A stretch of DNA of 64,000 bases, from NCBI GenBank assembly GCA_035221665.1, contig CM069165.1, positions 3,286,001-3,350,000 on the forward strand, written 5' to 3'. Source of the DNA: Okamejei kenojei. Taxonomy: Eukaryota. The translations under genes and the position numbers were made by a program. The notes beneath the pieces were generated by a model that made no database searches, was not told the origin of the DNA, and worked only from the letters and a program-made list of their open reading frames with translations. This document shows positions 9,026-24,297 of this stretch, one piece after another. How positions within the stretch are numbered: position 1 is the stretch's first letter; each line of letters opens with the position of its first letter.

Positions 9026-9052
9026 TCAATCAAACCTCGTGTTGTAAGATGT
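9026..9052 (-). CDS. TRBC: TCR beta constant exon 4 (cytoplasmic tail and stop)
   Basis: tctttcttatttcag|ACATCTTACAACACGAGGTTTGATTGA encodes TSYNTRFD*. Phase 0 fits exon 3, and it resembles elasmobranch TCRbeta tails as I recall them. Confidence 0.88.
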   Translation of the reverse strand, partial: TSYNTRFD

Positions 9053-11187: not shown

Positions 11188-11294
11188 CTTGCCTTTGCAA
11201 GCTAATACAGACGCAATTATTCCATAGAGAATGCTCTTGCAAATCAGGATCAGATAAGTTAGTTTCCCAGCTTCCATTGTCTGCGTTTTGGCTT
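11188..11294 (-). CDS. TRBC: TCR beta constant exon 3 (transmembrane)
   Basis: ccttaacag|AAGCC...AAG|gtaggt encodes (E)AKTQTMEAGKLTYLILICKSILYGIIASVLACKGK, with the TCRbeta TM pattern Y-x5-K-x2-LY (CD3-pairing Lys). Phase 1 in, phase 0 out. Confidence 0.94.
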
Positions 11295-12825
11295 CTGTTA
11301 AGGGAACATACCAATTTGCTATGAACATATTTAGTTAAGAATTAAGTTTAAACAATAAAATTCTTACTTGTTAAAGTAGGATATGCACTTTAGCACAACA
11401 GAAAATTATGAATTAGCAATGGCTGGAGTTGCGGAGTGTGAAGAAAGCTGTCAATGTATACAACGGAATATAGATCAGCTACAGAAACGGGCGGAGAAAA
11501 GGTAATGGAATTTATTCCGAGCAAGTCAACGGTGTTAAACTTTGGGAGGTTGAATGTAAGGGGAAATACTACATTGAATGTCAAGACACTTATCAGCATT
11601 GATGTATAGAGGGATCTTGGTGTCCAAGTCCTGACTTCCATGAAAGAAGCAAGACAAATATATACAGTTCCCCACCAAGTTTAGATTATTGTCACGTGTA
11701 CCGAGATGCAGTAAAACGCTTTTGTTACGTGCTAACCAGTTAGCTGAAAGACAATCCAATATAAACCAAGGCATCCACAGTGTGCATACACATGATAAAG
11801 GGAATAATGTGAATATCATTTAGTTCACGATGAAGTCCAGTAAATCGTCTCAAACGATAAATGAAATCAATGCAAGGGAAGTTGGTTCATGTAATTGTCT
11901 GTGTTGCATCCACAATTATCTGCAGTTGCCTGCGCTCTTGAACGGAGCAGTTCCTATTCCCAATTTTCCAGCAACTAGTTGTCCGACATATCTTTAAATC
12001 AAGAGGAGAGGAGTGAAATTGTAAAGAAGGAAGTGCAGATGCTGGAAAATCGTGCGTACACAAAATGCTGGAGCAACTCAGCGGGTGCAGCAGCATCTAT
12101 GGAGCGAAGGAGATAGGCAAAGTTTCGGGCAGAAACCCTGTACGAGAGGGCACTTGAAATCCATCCCCCGGAAGTCTCCATCGAAAATGTGGCATCTACG
12201 CCTGATGAGGTAGTTGATATCGATCTCAGTGGGACTTCCATGGCTGATAGGCCGGTCGAATTTGTCTCCTGCGGCCAGGGTTCTGGATCTTTCTGGAACC
12301 AGCAGGACCATTGCCATAGCCGAATTCTGAGCGCGACATTGCGGGATCCATATCCCTGCACCTGATCGGCCTATGCGGACTGTTCCAGTAACGTTGTCCT
12401 CCTCTCGGAGGCCGTGATCTCGGCTGGTCTTCCAAAACGGATCATGCAGAAAGGGTGCTGGAAAATTGTGGGTGGTCCGGTAAAGAAGCCACACCGGATG
12501 CTTGCCTTTTTCGGTCGGGCATTGAGTATAGGTTTTGAATGAAAGGTGAAGAGATACAGGTCCTTCATCAATGTCCAGAAACCTTGGTTCCATAGCCTTT
12601 CCATATTATCAGTTGTGCTGGTCCAGCATAGGCCACGGCCTCTGAGAGGAGTCCAACTACTGGAATGGTCCACCTTGGCCATTGAGGAGCCGAGATCGGC
12701 CTCGGAAGTTGGCTATGGGAACGGATCTCCTGTAGTTCCAGAGCACTGGCTGCTGGGTGCATATTCGAGCCAACAATCGGCCGCGGAAGTCAGGATGAGT
12801 TCCAGATCAGCCACCTCGCCGTAGG

Positions 12826-14712
12826 AACATAGAAAACAGTGCAGAAGGAGGCCATTCGGCCCTTCATTGTGATTATGACTGATCATCCACAACCAGTAAC
12901 CTGTGCCTGCTTTCTCCCCATACCACTTGATTCTGCTATTACCTAGAACTCTATCTAACTCTTTTAAATTAATCCAGAGAATTGGCCTCTACGTCATTCT
13001 GTGGCAGAGATTTCCACAAATTCACAACTTTCTGGGTGTGAAACGTTTTTTCTCACCTCAGTCTGAAATGACCTCCCCTTTCTTCTGAGACTGTTGCCCC
13101 TGGTTCTGTACCCAACGAATATTGGAACATTTTTTTCCTGCATCTAGCTTGTCCAGTCCGTTTATAATTGTTTGTGTTTCTATAAGATCCACACTGATCC
13201 TTCTAAACCCTAGTGACTACAATCGTAGTCTTACCAATCTTTCCTCATATGACAGTCCCGCCATCCCGGGATTAATCTCGTGAAGATATGCTGCATTTCC
13301 ACAATAGCAAGGATGTCCTTCCTCAAATTAGGAGACCAAAACTGCACACAATACTGCAGATGTGGTCTCACCAGGGCCCTGTACATCCCGGCCTATGTGC
13401 TACATTTCAGGGGGGGGGGATTCCTGGGGATGTTTCAAGGGTGTTCTTGTAATTTTGTCCGGATTAAAAGAGGTGCCGGTCAACCAGTTGTCGGAAAATC
13501 GGTGGTGGACCTGTACCATAACTAAAAGTCCATTCTACGAAACCTACTATTAAATCATTTTCCCAGCTTACATTGTCTGAATGTTAGCTCTGTTAGGAAA
13601 ACAGAGATATGCTCAATACCTTGACTGATGATGAAGACCAAATTAGAAATAAGAATATTAAATGGGAGATTATGTTACAGTTGTTCCAGCCATTATTGAG
13701 GACAGATTTGGAGGATCATGTTCAGTTTTGGTCATCCTGTTATGGGAAAAATGTTGTTCCTTGAAAGTAGCATCACAGGTAGATAGGGATGTCAAGAAAA
13801 CTTTTGGCACATTGGACCATCCGTCAGAGTATTGAATGTTGAAGTTGAGAAGGCATGTTACAGTTGTATAAGATGTTGGTGAGGCCGCATTTGGAGTATT
13901 GTATTTAGTTTTATAATAAACTATAAATGGTGCAGAGAAGTTTTACGAGGAGCGCAGGAGGACAATAGACAATTTACAATAGGAGCAGGGGTAGGCAATT
14001 TGGCCCTTCGAGCCAGCACCGCCAATCAATGCGATTATGGCCGATCATCCCCAATCAGTACCTCCTTCCTGCCTTCACCCCATATCCCCTGACTCCGCTA
14101 TGTTTAAGAGCGCTATCTAGGTCTCCCTTGAAATCATCCAGATAACCTGTCTCCACCAGTGGCTGAGAATTCCACAGACTCACCACTTTCTTTGAGAAAA
14201 AAGTGTTTCCTCGACTACGTTCTAAATGGCTTACTCCTTATTATTAAACGGTGGCCCCTGGTTCTGGACACCCACAACATCGGGAACATGTTTCTTCCTT
14301 CTAGCGTGTCCAAGCCCTTAAAAATCTTATATGTTTCAATGAGATCCCCTCTCATCCTTCTAAACTCCAGGGTGTACAGGCCCAGCTGCTCCATTCCCTC
14401 AGCATTTGGCAGCCCCACTAATCCGGGAATTAACCTTGTAAACCTACGCTGCACTCCATCAATAGCAAGAATACCCTTCCTCAAATTAGGGGACCAAAAC
14501 TGCAAGAATATCCTTCCTCAAATTAGGGGACCAAAACTGCACACAATGCTCAAGGTGTGGTTTCACTAGGGCTCTGTACAACTGTAGGTACAACTGTAGA
14601 AGGACCTCTTTGTTCCTGTATTCGATTCCTCTTGTTATAAAGGCCAACATGCCATTCGCTCTGATCACTGCCTGCTGTACCTGCATGCTTATACCTGCTG
14701 TACCTGCATGCA
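12826..14712 (-). mobile_element. CR1 3' fragments (12826-13385 and 13965-14712) flanking the psi-TM copy
   Basis: VQRRFTRLIPG...LGLYTLEFRRMRGDLIETYKI, and PHLEHCVQFWSP. Confidence 0.85.
13548..13589 (-). pseudogene. second, internally deleted and frameshifted copy of the TRBC TM exon in Cbeta intron 2
   Basis: cctaacag|AGCTAACATTCAGACAATGTAAGCTGGGAAAATG aligns to exon 3 cttaacag|AAGCCAAAACGCAGACAATGGAAGCTGGGAAACTA. It is followed by GTAGGT like the true donor. The upstream flank (13600-13900) matches the flank of the 23.4-kb copy. Confidence 0.75.
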
Positions 14713-15626: not shown

Positions 15627-15647
15627 CTTTATTTAAGCCACAAGTCT
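15627..15647 (-). CDS. TRBC: TCR beta constant exon 2 (connecting peptide with interchain Cys)
   Basis: 21-nt exon tttcttctttcag|AGACTTGTGGCTTAAATAAAG|gtgagc encodes (E)TCGLNK, phase 1/1, matching the short CG-containing hinge exon of TCRbeta. Confidence 0.93.
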
Positions 15648-16244: not shown

Positions 16245-17967
16245 CCAAGATAAATGTAGAATTAGCGTTACCTAATTTGATATGTTATTTTTGGCCGGTT
16301 CTGATTAAAAATATGAATTTTTGGCTGGTAAAAATGGATCAGGAACCAGCTTGGCTGAAGATGGAAATGGAAGATTGTTTACCGTTTGATATAAGTTCGA
16401 TTCTTCCTGCGTCAAGTTAAGTACAAACACAACTTCAATATGTAATTACTTCTAATAAAAATGTTTTACAAAAAACATATATTTTACAAAAGGAAACCCT
16501 ATAATTTATAGCAATATAAGTATTTGGAAACAAATAGTTAAGACATTACATTTGGATAAAGTGTCACTCTGTTTACCTATTATGAATAATGCTTTATTTA
16601 AACCTTCTATATTGTATAAGGGGTTTAGACACTGAAAGCATTTAGGAATTATAAGGATAGAACACCATTACAGGAAAGGAACATTTCTATCATTTAAAGA
16701 ATTAAAAGATATCTTTCGAATACACCCAAATAACTTGTTTAGGTATTTACAAATTAGAGACTATATCAAGTCAAACATGCAAGATTATATGAATAGAGAA
16801 CCAGGATTACTGGAAGAGTGGCTTTTCACGCATCCGAATACAGAAACATTAATAGCGTGCATATATAATACTCTTTTGGGTAGGGAAGTCCCAACAACAG
16901 AATCATACCGTCAGATATGGGAAAATGAAATAGGTCTATCTATAATGAAAGACGCTTGGGAAGAAATATTACAACGTATACGCCGATGCTCATTAAATGC
17001 CAAACATACTTTGGTAGAATTTAAAGTATTACATAGATTACACTACTCAAAAACTAAATTAAATAGAATTGTTCCTAACATTTCTTCTATTTGCGATAAA
17101 TGTCAGCATTACGAAGCTAACTTAACGCATAGTTTTGTAACATGCATTAAACTTAATATTTTAATTTTTAAGTTTTAAGTTTTAATTTTTAAGCTGATAT
17201 TTTTTGGAATCAATTTTGAAGTTATTAAAACTATATCGGATCCTGATCTAAAGCTAATAATATTAGCAGTGAGTGACTAAAGCTTAATATTAACAGTAAG
17301 TCAAAGAACGTTTCTTGATTACTGTTTGATAATTGGAAAAAAAATAATATTAACATTCTGGAAGGGAACATTATCCACCACAATCAAAATGTGGACTGTG
17401 GAAACGTCGGAGACGTTGCAATTGGAGAGATTTAGGGTTGTCCTAATGGACAAATATGAACCTTTTGAACACATATGGTCTCCATTCATTGATTATTTAA
17501 AGGGGTAGCTGAGCTCAGCACCGTAACTCAATAATAACCCTGGTGTAGGATTAGATGAAAAGTTGTATTCTGGGATCTGTATACACGTCTCTATAGATAT
17601 TGTTATGTGAAACTGTTCCATTCATTGTTAAGATGTATTCCTTATTTTTTATTTATTTTTCTATAGATATATATATTTATTATATAATAATTGTTTTTAT
17701 TTTTTTATTTGCTTATCTTTATTCTTTTTTATTTTTTATTCTTTCTTATATAATCATTATTATTTAATCACCACTTCTTGATTATCGATTTATACTTTTA
17801 TTTGTATTCCACTCCCTTTCCTTCCCAAAAAAAAACAAAAAACAGTAGCGTATATAAATTATTCCGTAACATCTGTACAACTTTGGTGACAAGTCTAATT
17901 TATATTTGAAGTACTGTTGTTGCTTAGATAATATGCAATGATACTAATAAAAATATATTTTTTAAAA
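16245..17967 (+). mobile_element. L1/Tx1-clade LINE 3' fragment (ORF2 C-terminal CCHC finger, T-rich 3'UTR, polyA signal)
   Basis: FRYLQIRDY...FKVLHRLHYSKTKL...CDKCQHYEANLTHSFVTC...WSPFIDYL*, with AATAAA near 17946. Confidence 0.88.
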
Positions 17968-18022
17968 GGTTCGATGAGGTCTACCCTCATCCAGCGAGTA
18001 CAGGCCCAATGCTGTCAGACAC

Positions 18023-18520
18023 TCATAGAAACATAGAAACATAGAAAATAGGTGCAGGAATAGGCCATTCGGCCCTTCGAGCCTGCACCGCCATTCAATA
18101 TGATCATGGCTGATCATCCAACTCCGTATCCTGTACCTGCCTTCTCTACATACCCCCTGATCCGATTAGCCACAATGTCCACATCTAACTCCCTCTTAAA
18201 TATAGCCACTGAACTAGCCTTAACTACCTTCTGTGGCAGAGAATTCCACAGATTCACCTCTCTCTGTGTGAAAGACTTTCTTCTCATCTCGGTCCTACAA
18301 GATTTCCCTCTTATCCTTAAACTGTGACCGCTTGTTCTGAACTTCCCCAACATGGGGAACAATCTTCCTGTATCTAGCCTGTCCAACCCCTTAAGAATTT
18401 GGTAAGTTTATATAAGATCCCCGCTCAATCTTCTAAATTCTAGCGAGTACAAGCCGAGTCTATCCTGTCTTTCTTCATAGGAAATTCCTGCCATCCCACG
18501 AATCAGTCTGGTTAACAGTC
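18023..18520 (-). mobile_element. 5'-truncated CR1 3' end
   Basis: (CATAGAAA)n tail and GHSLRIRG...VNLWNSLP. Confidence 0.9.
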
Positions 18521-19934
18521 TGAATCATACGTTAACCGAAACATTCCCTGGATCATTCTCATAAAGCACTTTTGTTTTGTTCTGTATGTTAGCCATCGTC
18601 TGCAGTTATAGTGTCATAGAGTCACAATCGTGGAATCAGGCGCTTTGGAGCAACTTGACCATGCCGACCAACATGCCCCATCTATTCTAGTCCCACCAGC
18701 CTGCATTTGGCCCATATGCTTGTAAGGCTCTCCTATCCATGAACGTGTCTAATGTTTCTGAGATGTTATGATAATACTTGCCTCAACTACCTCCTCTGGC
18801 AGCTCGTTTCATATCCCCGGCACCCTCTGTGTAATAAACGTTACCTTTCAGGTTCATATTATATCTTTCCTTAATTTCACCTAAACCTACAGTATGTCCT
18901 ATGGTCCCCGATTCCCCTACTCTGGGTAAAAGACTCAGTGCACTCACACATCATTTTCCTCTAGTGGCATTATACACCTCTATACAATCACCATTCATCC
19001 TCAGGCACTCCAAAGAATAAAGTCCTAGCCTACGCAACCTCTCCCTACATCTCATGCCTTCGAGTCCTGGAACAATCGTCATAAGAATAGAACATCATGA
19101 GAGGCATAGATCGGATAGGTCTGTAGTCTTTTGCCCAGAATAGTGGAATCGAGAACCAGAGGACATAGGTTTAAGGTGAAGGAGAAAAGATGTAATAGGA
19201 AACCGAGGGGTATTTTTTTTTCATACAGGGGATGGTGGGTATATGGAACTAGCTGTCAGAAGAGGTAGTTGAGGTATATACTATTGCAAAGTTGAAGATA
19301 CATTTAGACAGGTACATGAATAGAGGAGGATTAGAGGGATATGGGCCGAATGCACGCAGGTGGGACTAGTGTCGTTTGGACATGTTGGCTGGTGTGTTAA
19401 AGTTGGGGTGAAGGTCCTATGTCCACTATGACTGTCTACTATTCAGTAATGTTCGATATTCCATACATTCATGTTCATACGTTTTAGGAGCACAATTAGG
19501 ACATTCGGCCCATCTAGTGTACTCTGCCATTCAATAATGGCTGATCTATTTTTCCCTCTTGACCCCATTCTATTGCCTTCTCCCCATAACCACTGACACC
19601 CTTACTCAGCAAGAATCCACCAATCTTTGCCCTTAAATATCTAATGATTTGCACATCACAGCCTTCTGTGCCAATTAATTGCACAGATTCACCACCCTTT
19701 GTCCACAGAAATTCCTCCTCATCTCGTTTCTAAAATTACGTCCTTTTATTATGAGGCCGTGGACTCTGGTCATCAACTCTCCCACTAATGGAACCAACCA
19801 CCCCACATCCACCAATCCAGGTAGCACCTCGTCCTTCTAAACTCCAGTGCGCACAGGCCCAGAAGCCGCAAATTCCCCTGTACGTCATCCCAATCATCCC
19901 CGGGGTCATTCTCATACACCACTTTTAGTTACAT

Positions 19935-22900
19935 AAATACATAGAAAGGAGGTGCATGTGTAGCCTATTCAGCCCTTCGAGGCAACAGCGTCATTCAATT
20001 TGGTATGGCTGATCATCCACAATCTGTACCCAGTTCCTGCCTTCTCTCCATAACCCTTGACTCCGCCAGTTGTAAGAGCTCTATCTATCTCGCTTTTGAC
20101 CAGCGAATCGGCCTCCACTGCGTTCTGAGTAGTGAATTCCACAAATTCACAACTCTGTGTGTGAAAAAGTTTGTCCTCATCTCAGTTCCAACTGGCCTAC
20201 CACTTATTTTTAAACTTTGGCCCCTGGTTCTGGACTCCCCCAGCAGCAGGAACATGTTTCCTACATCTAGTGCGTCCAATCCATTAATACATTTATATGT
20301 GTATATAAGATCTCGCCTCATCCTACTGAATCCACTGATTACAAGCCCAGTCGCTCCATTATTTCGTAAGTTGACAGTTCCACCATTCTTCTGAACCTAC
20401 ACTGCACCTCCTCAATAGTAAGAATGTGCTGATTCAAAATACTAGATCCAAACTGCACACAATATTCTAGCTGTGATCTCACCTGTGCCCTTTACCTCTG
20501 CAGAATCACCTCTTTGCTCCTATATTCAACTCCTCTCGTTAGGAAGGTAAACATGCCATTAACTTTCTTTAATGCCTGATGTATCTGCATGCTTACTTCA
20601 GTGACAGATGTACTAGGGCACACAGGCCTCGTTGTCCTTCCCCTTTTCCAAAACAGACACCATTTAGGTAATAATATGCCCACCCGTTCTTGCCACCAAA
20701 GTAGCTAACCTCACATTTACCCACATAATACTGCAACGACCACGCATCTGCCCACTCACCCACCCTGACCAAGTCACCCTGCATCCCCATAGCAGCCTCT
20801 TCACACTTCACACGGCCACCCAGCTTTATGTCATCTGCAAATTGGCTAATGTTACTTTTAAATTCCTCATCGAAAACGTGAATGTATATTGTGATTAGCT
20901 GCAGTCCCAGCACTGAGCTTTGCGGCAGTAGTCACTGCCTGCCATTCTGAAAGGGACCCGTTAATCCTTACACTGTGTTTCCTGTCTGCAAACTAATTTG
21001 TTATCCATGTCAACGCTCTATCCCCAATACCATGTGCTCTAAATTTGCCCACTTATCTCCTGTGTGGGACCTTCTCAAAGATGTTCTGAAAGTCCAGGTA
21101 CACTAAATCCAGCGGCTCTCCCGTGTTTATTTTTCTTGTTACATCTTCAAAAAATTCCAGAAGATTTGTGAAGCATGATTGCTCCTTCGTAAATCCATGG
21201 TGACTTGGAACGATCCTGGTACGGCTATCCAAATGTGCTGCTATTACATCTTTGTTAATTAACCAGCATCTGCTCCACCATTGATGTCAGGCTAACCGGT
21301 CTATCATTTGTGATCTTTCGTGTTTTTACCGGCTTTTTCAGTTCTTGTTAATATTATCTGACAATGGCCAATAGGTGCAGGAGTAGGCCATTTGGCCCTT
21401 CGAGCCAGCACCGCCATTCACTGTGATCATGGCCGATCATCCACATTCAGTGCCCCGTTCCTGCCTTCTCACCATATCCGCTGACCTTATTATATTTAAC
21501 AACTCTATCTAACACTATCTTGAAAGCATCCAGAGCCTTCCACTGATTTCTGAGGTAGAGAATCCCATAGATCCACAACTCTCTGGGTGAAAACGTTTTT
21601 CCTCATCTCTGTTATAAAAGGCCTACCCCTTATTCTTCAGCTGGTTCTGGACTCCCTCAACACCGGGAACATGTTTCCTGCCTCTAGCGTGTGCAATCCC
21701 TTACACATCGTATGTGTTCCAATAGGATATCCTCTCATCCTTATACATTCCGGAGTATACATGCTCAGCCGCTCCATTCTATCAACATATGATAGACCTG
21801 CCATCCCGGGAATTAACCTCGTGAACCTACAATAGCAAGAATGTCCTTCCTCAAATTTTGAGACCAAAACTGCACACAATACTCCAGGTGTGGTCTCACT
21901 GGGGTCCTGTGCAGCTGCAGAAGGACGTATTTGCTCCTATACTCAACTCCTCGTGTTATGAAGGCCAACATACCATTAGCTTTCTTCACTGCCATATATC
22001 CACATTAAGCTACATCTGCCATACATCCATACACACTGCCACCCAGCTTTGTGCCATCTGCAAATTTGCTAATGTTACTTTGAATCCCTTCATCAAAATT
22101 ATTGATGTATATCGTAAATAGCTACACTACCAGCACCGAACATGCAATACACAACTTGTCACCGCTGTGTCAATCTGAAAGGGGCCCGTTAATCCCTGCA
22201 CTTTGTCTCCTGTCTGCCAACCAATGTTCTATCCATGTCAGTACCCTACCCCCAATACCTTGTTCTCTATTTCTGCCCACAAATCTTCTATATGGGACCA
22301 TATCAAATGTTTTCTGAAAGTCCACCGACACGACATCCTCTGGCTCTCCCTTGTACATGTTCGTAGTTACATCCTCAAGAAATTGCACAAGAATAGTCAA
22401 GCATGATGTCCCCTTCATAAATCCATGCTGACTCGGACCGATCCTGCTACCGCTATCTAAACGTGCCGCTATTTCATCATTTTATGATTGACCCCAGTAT
22501 CTTTCCCACCACCGATGTCAGGCTAACTGTTCTATAATTCATTGTTTTCTCTCTCTCGCCTTTCTTACATTAGCTACCCCCTAATCAACAGGAACTGATT
22601 CTGAATCTATAGAACATTGAAAAATGATCACCGATGTGTCCAGGATTTCTAGAGCCACTTCATTATTACCCTGGGATGCAGACCATCAGGCCCTGGGGGT
22701 TTAACAGCCTTCAGTCCCTTCAGTCTACCCAACGCCATGTTCTGCCTAATGTGATTTTCCTTCAGTTCTTCCATTACCCTAGATCCCCTGGCCACAAGAA
22801 CATCAGGAACATTGTTTGTATCTTCCTTCGTGAAGACCGATCCAAAGTACCTGTTCAATTCATGTGCCATTTCCTTGTTCCCTAAAATAAATTCACATGC

Positions 22901-22950
22901 TTCAGTTTTCAAGGGTCCAACTTTGGTCTTAACTTATGTTTCCTCTTCAC
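19935..22950 (-). mobile_element. two tandem degraded CR1 ORF2 3' portions (about 19935-21305 and 21370-22950)
   Basis: SQFADDIKLGG, RPHLEYCVQFWS, DFQKTFDMVP, LNRYFGSVFTKED. Confidence 0.87.
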
Positions 22951-23305
22951 TTACCTGCCTGCATGCGATCCATATCCCTGCATGTCTGCGCTTCCCTGTG
23001 CCTGTCTAACAGCCACTTAAACGTCACTGTCGCAGCTGCCTCCGTCATCTGCCCCGGCAATGTGCTACAGGCCCTCAAGGATAGGCTTATACACTCTATG
23101 ACCCGATGATTCCTGGATCTTTGAGTTTAATTATGTAGCTCCCTGAAAGCGGCAATACTAGTAGATATAGTGACAACGAAGACGAACAGTGTGCTTGCCT
23201 GCATCGGTCAAGAAATTGAGCAAATGTTTCGAATGTAAGGGGAAGATGTACCAGGTCCAAATCACCTTCCTAGCAAACTTTTCTACCTTATTTCAGACTA
23301 TAAAA

Positions 23306-23445
23306 TCATGGCCTTAATTCCACTAGACAAGGAGGGTTTGTTGTAGTTGTTTTACAAGCTAATACTGAAACAATTATTCCACAGAGGATAGTTTTGCAAA
23401 TGAGGTAAGTCAGCTTCGCAGCTTGCGTTGTTTGAAATTCAGCCT
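23306..23445 (-). other. duplicated TRBC transmembrane exon (open frame, own tail and stop) in Cbeta intron 1; alternative exon or pseudo-exon
   Basis: ctcataacag|AGGCTG... encodes (E)AEFQTTQAAKLTYLICKTILCGIIVSVLACKTTTTNPPCLVELRP*. It is clearly paralogous to exon 3, has the same acceptor phase, and lies 501 nt after the exon 1 donor. Confidence 0.8.
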
Positions 23446-23946
23446 CTGTTATGAGGACAGAATTATACTCAATACACTGACTGATGAAGATCAAGAAAAA
23501 AATAGAAATAGGAATAGAATTTGGGAGGACATGCTACAGATGTGCAGACATTGGTGAGGCCACATATGGAGTATTGTGTTCAGTTTTAGTCATCCTGTTT
23601 TGCGAAGTTCTTCAAGAGTGGCATCGAAGGAAGATGGGGGGGGGGGTGAAGAAAGCTTTTCGCACAATGTCCTTCATCAGCCAGAATATTGCGAATCAAC
23701 GTTGCGTGGTCATGCTACAGTTTCATAAGATATTGGTGAGGCCACATTTGTAGTATTGTGTTCAGTTTGGTCACCATGTTATCGGAAAGATTATGTTCCT
23801 TGAATGTGGGTTTGCAGGTAGATAGGGTGGTCAAGAAAGCTTTTGGTACATCGACCTACATTGTTACATCACCTGTCAGAGAACTGGGAACAGAAATTGG
23901 GAGGTCATGTTACAGTTGTACAAGATATTGGGGTTAGATACCTCAC

Positions 23947-24297
23947 CGTGTTTGATGTTGTGGGTGCCATGTTTTGTTTGTGGTGTAGATCCATTCTTGT
24001 AGTGGTCTACTTCACACATGACTTGTTTGGCCTTTGCGTAATCTCGGGCGTCCAATCTAATGCGACTACTGATACTGAAGGTTTTCCCTCCGTCATCGCT
24101 CTGGGAGCTAGGATCCATCTGGATGTTAGGACTATCTTTGGATTGTTGAAAGCCATCAATAAACCAACGTATCTTGATGCTGTCCGGGTAGAAATCAGTG
24201 ATTAGACAAACCACCGTGGCTTTGCCCTTGCTATTAATTTCTTGGTCAGACGGCTGGAGAATTGTAACTTCGGGAGATCGCAGCTCCAATTTTGGAT
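23947..24297 (-). CDS. TRBC: T-cell receptor beta constant region exon 1 (Ig C1 domain)
   Basis: Encodes (D)PKLELRSPEVTILQPSDQEINSKGKATVVCLITDFYPDSIKIRWFIDG...FSISSRIRL...MCEVDHYKNG...NIKH. It has the TCRbeta C hallmarks PS..EI..K.KATxVCL..FYPD.....W and SSR, plus both Ig cysteines. Acceptor ctctctttcag|AT at 24298 and donor G|GTGAGG at 23946; phase 1 at both ends. Confidence 0.97.

Follow-up and report, generated by a model that had tools for sequence, protein, structure and literature searches.

A probable relic transmembrane exon with a history of coding constraint in the first intron of a skate TCR-beta constant gene

The T-cell receptor beta (TCR-beta) constant gene in the window, the whole 64,000-nucleotide stretch of skate DNA analyzed here, carries within its first intron a paralog of its own transmembrane (TM) exon, which raises the question of whether this gene can end its protein in two ways or whether the additional exon is a remnant of an older arrangement. 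The sequence-only reading of this locus had proposed the former, namely that direct splicing of the C-domain exon to the paralog would give a membrane-anchored beta chain that lacks the hinge, and with it the interchain disulfide, and that ends in a new tail. The account that we consider probable is that the paralog, termed psiTM-A, is a relic TM exon that was once under coding selection, is now decaying, and is open in this window by survival.

The window contains one TCR-beta constant (C-beta) gene, which is located on the minus strand together with all of the features described below. Exon 1, coding for the Ig C domain (23947-24297), has a 2-nt start phase and 116 codons, and its last single nucleotide, a G, is followed by the donor gtgagg. 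The protein that it encodes is 85% identical to Leucoraja erinacea LOC129712847 (P0030), 73% identical to the skate-like TCR-beta chain P0013 and 51% identical to Mustelus asterias TCR-beta (P0001), values that point to a skate other than L. erinacea. A pattern scan located the hinge exon with the interchain Cys at 15627-15647, where it reads E-TCGLNK-E, comparable to EICGLSKE in P0001 and ETCGINKE in P0030. Canonical TM exon 3 (11188-11294; tblastn with P0013, E=1e-14) reads AKTQTMEAGKLTYLILICKSILYGIIASVLACKGK between the acceptor cccttaacag and the donor gtaggt, and the coding part of exon 4 (9026-9052; tblastn), preceded by the acceptor ttatttcag, reads TSYNTRFD-stop. J-beta-like segments with the pattern FG[KN]GTKLV[VI] were also detected by tblastn with P0013 on the minus strand upstream of the C gene, at 31026-31073, 41231-41269, 42951-42998 and 44654-44701.

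The first base of psiTM-A is at 23445 in intron 1, 501 nt past the exon 1 donor (23947) and before the hinge exon (15647-15627), just as the sequence-only reading had placed it, and between that donor and its own acceptor there is no other AG-acceptor-like site that has exon homology. The hinge acceptor is 8.3 kb further on than the acceptor of psiTM-A. This acceptor, ...tctgtcctcataacag (...cctcataacag), has the TAACAG form seen at the true TM exon, with a similar pyrimidine content, and the phase-1 junction cataacag|AG at 23446/23445 joins the last G of exon 1 with AG to give Glu, as it does in the true TM exon. In the frame set by exon 1, psiTM-A reads E-AEFQTTQAAKLTYLICKTILCGIIVSVLACKTTTTNPPCLVELRP-stop, with 46 open codons that end in a TGA at 23307-23305. 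The acceptor, the phase and the open frame that had been described for the paralog are thus borne out by the sequence itself. The part of psiTM-A that is homologous to the TM exon, AEFQTTQAAKLTYLICKTILCGIIVSVLACK, occupies 23351-23445 and aligns by blastn with the canonical TM exon in the window (target 11194-11308) with 73% identity over 115 nt (E=2.5e-14). It also aligns with P0013 by tblastn (E=3e-9, 66% over 41 aa). Codon comparison with the true TM exon confirms an in-frame 6-nt loss that removes IL, the replacement of LYG by LCG, and the retention of the TM Lys (LICKTIL). The homology spans the exon up to the Lys codon plus approximately 14 nt upstream of the acceptor, beyond which the flanks of psiTM-A cannot be aligned with those of the true exon (z=1.5 upstream and 0.1 downstream). 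An alignable exon between unalignable flanks is the pattern expected if the exon alone was conserved.

The surroundings of psiTM-A are rich in repeats, which is what would favor a reading in which the similarity and the open frame are products of chance, or in which this piece is part of a transposon and not of the C-beta gene. Specifically, the 501-nt interval between the exon 1 donor and psiTM-A (23446-23946) consists mostly of a high-copy LINE-3'-like repeat, with about 2.5 tandem units of 181-195 nt each detected by repeat search at 23512-23931, and 25 nt of this repeat recur in inverted orientation (23465-23489) just upstream of the psiTM-A acceptor. Against such a reading are the blastn and tblastn matches to TM exons and the codon periodicity of the differences between psiTM-A and the true exon, and we regard it as extremely improbable. 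The contig depth of the LINE-3'-like repeat is 1e3-1e5 in all four sequencing runs, as compared to a single-copy depth of about 4.5 for the psiTM-A region (23257-23422) in run X1, which rules out carriage of psiTM-A as transposon cargo. The remainder of intron 1, past psiTM-A and before the hinge exon, is filled on the minus strand (17900-22950) by several degenerate LINE reverse-transcriptase fragments with stops.

The 3' end of psiTM-A differs from that of the true exon. Where the true exon reads AAA GGC AAG|gtaggt, psiTM-A reads AAA ACA ACT ACA, such that the GK codons and the gtaggt donor are replaced by a read-through tail, TTTTNPPCLVELRP, which together with the TGA occupies 23305-23350 and has no homology to the true exon. 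A search for a good in-phase GT donor in psiTM-A found none, and the link to exon 4 with its TSYxxRFD tail is thus gone. The same absence rules out psiTM-A as an internal cassette exon.

A live psiTM-A would consequently be an alternative terminal exon, with exon 1 spliced to 23445 and polyadenylation after the ATTAAA that the sequence-only reading had noted about 175 nt after the stop. This hexamer is indeed present at 23131-23126, 174 nt past the stop. Canonical poly(A) hexamers occur on the minus strand of the window at 1.65 per kb, however, a density at which at least one is expected within 300 nt approximately 40% of the time. The ATTAAA is therefore no more than what chance gives and carries no weight alone. 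It also falls inside a 194-nt segment (23063-23256) that is partly repeat-like and that is absent from a closely related contig described below; target-site duplications around this segment, which may reflect either an insertion or a deletion, were sought and none were found. An 18-nt match directly beside the hexamer (23132-23149) recurs at 32605-32622, 35537-35554 and 48483-48500, each time near a masked N run, and is probably part of a dispersed repeat.

We next consider what the substitutions indicate about the past of psiTM-A. Over the 31 codons that align between psiTM-A and the true TM exon there are 12.5 synonymous differences over 22 synonymous sites and 9.5 non-synonymous differences over 71 non-synonymous sites (Fisher p=1.5e-4). 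The excess is more pronounced in the 22-codon TM core, which shows 10 synonymous versus 3 non-synonymous differences (p=8e-6). Constraint on the true exon does not by itself account for this. When we simulated a psi lineage that was neutral from the split on, opposite a true exon that remained constrained, the probability of obtaining at least 10 synonymous together with at most 3 non-synonymous differences was ≤0.002 for every branch length and for kappa values of 1-8. The synonymous excess, these simulations, and a homology that extends no further than the exon and its acceptor together indicate that purifying selection maintained the psi lineage as a coding exon over much of its past. This would mean that a batoid C-beta locus once had two translated TM exons, either in one gene or in two.

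There is also evidence that this constraint has since been lost. The TM motif [YF]-x5-K-x3-[YF] is kept in 36 of the 40 retrieved TCR-beta chains, which represent sharks, rays, a salamander, teleosts and mammals; these 36 are every chain that has a TM. By comparison, psiTM-A has Y-x3-K-x3-C, so that both the spacing and the second aromatic of the motif are broken. A second line of evidence comes from a 482-nt contig of run X1, derived from a related organism and present at a depth of about 4.5, which is approximately 94% identical to the window and collinear with 23000-23062 plus 23257-23575. In this contig the acceptor AG is changed to AT (23446), and a 1-nt deletion at 23416 shifts the frame to EAKFQTMQAWS-stop. 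The contig also lacks the 23063-23256 segment and with it the ATTAAA. In-frame substitutions between the window and the X1 contig comprise 7 non-synonymous and 0 synonymous changes. Both copies lack IL and have the Cys and the Thr-rich tail, which indicates that these three changes predate the split of the window and X1 sequences. A frameshift in relatives had been named beforehand as a sign of a decaying duplicate, and this copy carries one, although the contig has a depth of 4.5 and may be a paralog rather than an ortholog, in which case its defects would be no proof that psiTM-A is dead.

One feature of the X1 comparison runs the other way. Over the 84 nt that make up the TM core (23332-23415), the window and the X1 contig do not differ at all, whereas the surrounding 235 nt differ by 15 substitutions and 2 indels. 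Given flanks that differ by about 6%, identity over 84 nt has a probability of about 0.01-0.03 under uniform neutrality, and it could be due to chance, to a conversion tract or to lingering constraint. The evidence on purifying selection in the coding sequence is thus divided, with strong constraint over the whole history on the one hand, and on the other hand a recent record of exclusively non-synonymous change that nevertheless leaves this core untouched.

These observations allow the live-exon reading to be weighed. It would have psiTM-A provide a functional membrane-anchored TCR-beta with no hinge Cys and a new Thr/Pro tail, and it draws on a phase that fits exon 1, an AG acceptor preceded by a reasonable pyrimidine tract, the 46-codon open frame, the retained TM Lys, the strong purifying selection to which the TM core was once subject and the 84-nt identity to the X1 copy. 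Disulfide-free TCR-beta also occurs naturally, as the retrieved teleost chains P0021-P0025 have no Cys in the connecting peptide between the C domain and the TM. These teleost chains indicate that TCR-beta can function without the disulfide, but they retain the full [YF]-x5-K-x3-[YF] motif and a normal exon order. Opposing this reading are the broken motif, a near-identical copy that has lost both acceptor and frame and differs by non-synonymous substitutions only, and a poly(A) hexamer that is at chance level and missing from that copy. In addition, a search of the 45-aa psiTM-A peptide against 1.84 billion protein representatives returned 0 matches to this C-terminus at E≤0.001, a result to which a query this short lends little power. 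On balance we consider it quite unlikely that psiTM-A is a live terminal exon. What stands of the hinge-less isoform is that exon 1 and psiTM-A join in frame to specify a hinge-less and Cys-less chain with a TM-like segment; its use at the present day is left unsupported by the X1 defects, the motif break, the donor loss and the chance-level hexamer.

Further information on the age and fate of psiTM-A comes from a third copy of the TM exon, psiTM-B, that is present in intron 2 (13556-13690, with the copy itself at ~13590-13556; blastn 76% over 111 nt, E=2e-15). This copy breaks off after about 35 nt and is missing 1 nt, and after the hinge it would read ELTFRQCKLGK-stop. The gene thus holds paralogous copies of its TM exon, of which at least one, psiTM-B, is plainly dead, as befits a relic exon. 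Upstream of psiTM-A and psiTM-B there is a common flank of approximately 100 nt (z=18 versus shuffles) that the true exon lacks and that is built of fragments of the high-copy LINE-3'-like repeat; the layout with the inverted 25-nt fragment just ahead of the acceptor likewise precedes psiTM-B. In the first 38 exon nt, psiTM-A and psiTM-B have 4 sites in common that distinguish them from the true exon, and there are 6 psiTM-A-specific and 4 psiTM-B-specific sites. The tree ((A,B),TM) is supported by both the 4 common sites and the common flank. In its ecto part, psiTM-A evidently changes as fast as the dead copy psiTM-B. A rough comparison with psiTM-B suggests that constraint on the TM core of psiTM-A may have persisted beyond the A/B split (P about 0.05). 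Moreover, by a rough estimate 31 homologous codons stay open through 10-15% neutral change in about 1/6 of cases, which makes one open copy among three unremarkable.

The history that best accommodates these results, the order of which we infer along with the present-day silence of psiTM-A, would be as follows. psiTM-A would be an old duplicate of the TM exon that became lodged in intron 1 of the skate C-beta gene, and it and psiTM-B would descend from a common ancestor, both having diverged long ago from the functional TM exon. The psi lineage would then have been translated and under purifying selection for much of the period that followed, perhaps by providing the TM exon to a different C-beta gene, perhaps as an alternative exon within the present one. 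Constraint would later have relaxed, with the loss of two residues, the motif aromatic and the donor. Survival, and not selection, is the most likely reason that the frame of the copy in the window remains open and its acceptor retains the AG, and most likely psiTM-A contributes no functional protein today.

Silence at the protein level would be compatible with splicing, and psiTM-A could be spliced in the role of a poison or decoy terminal exon, or simply as noise, so that a share of the C-beta pre-mRNA would end up as a truncated non-signaling product. The coding content of psiTM-A would be irrelevant to such a role. The position of an intact acceptor 501 nt from the donor and well ahead of the hinge acceptor fits this possibility, as does the fact that the acceptor-proximal bases are the sole intronic part that can still be aligned with the true exon. 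That the X1 copy no longer has the acceptor AG speaks against a conserved splicing role, however, and we regard this possibility as unlikely.

psiTM-A can also be set beside known systems. Relative to canonical C-beta exon 3, which encodes the end of the connecting peptide plus the TM, as seen in P0030 and in other shark and ray TCR-beta chains, psiTM-A is homologous and has in common the TAACAG acceptor, phase 1, the TM Lys and a batoid-type ...VSVLACK ending. It differs by its position in intron 1 ahead of the hinge, by a first Tyr that lies two residues closer to the Lys, by a Cys in place of the second aromatic, and by having no donor, such that it reads into 14 unrelated codons and a stop. 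With relic exons that arise from tandem exon duplication it has in common a duplicate located in an intron, a broken sister copy, the loss of one splice site and recent change that looks neutral, and it departs from them in that its long past coding constraint, 10 synonymous versus 3 non-synonymous differences in the TM core, is unusually clear.

Human TRGC2 has a duplicated or triplicated hinge exon 2 that lacks the interchain Cys and yields a non-disulfide-linked gamma-delta TCR. psiTM-A resembles TRGC2 as an intragenic exon duplication in a TCR constant gene with a predicted chain that has no interchain disulfide. The duplicated TRGC2 exons are all spliced into mRNA, such that their use is proven, whereas psiTM-A is a duplicated TM exon that would need a terminal-exon role. 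By analogy, the closest parallels to psiTM-A are ordinary relic exons and, among TCR genes, the Cys-less hinge exons of TRGC2. Immunoglobulin heavy chains provide the other comparison, in that their secreted and membrane C-termini are produced through competing splice and poly(A) sites in a manner that is conserved, regulated and documented. The proposed TCR-beta isoform would likewise derive from an early terminal exon that brings a poly(A) site of its own and competes with the exons downstream, but for psiTM-A the hexamer is at the chance level and is missing in a near-identical copy.

A broader version of the live-exon reading is that skates keep a second TM exon that is still spliced to the C-domain exon in at least one of several C-beta genes, and that this exon would give a hinge-less, disulfide-free TCR-beta with an altered CD3-docking helix and a cytoplasmic tail of its own. 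We consider this version, too, to be quite unlikely. If it were true, the historical coding constraint would be the trace of a function of the hinge-less isoform, and a T-cell receptor chain would have an Ig-like choice of C-termini. Were psiTM-A itself in use, TCR-beta would have an alternative membrane anchor of a kind not previously described for this chain, with implications for the pairing of the receptor with TCR-alpha and CD3 in the most ancient jawed vertebrates. Literature searches for skate C-beta exon structure or for a second TM exon found nothing, and a metagenome scan with a 29-nt core pattern of psiTM-A gave 0 matches. For annotation there is also a practical warning, as an in-phase open exon 501 nt past a donor can mislead gene predictors.

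Finally, the connecting-peptide segment TTQAAKL of psiTM-A (23406-23426, minus strand) is identical to a segment of the teleost TCR-beta chain P0021 from Dissostichus (KTTQAAKLSY), which most likely represents convergence in a short motif.
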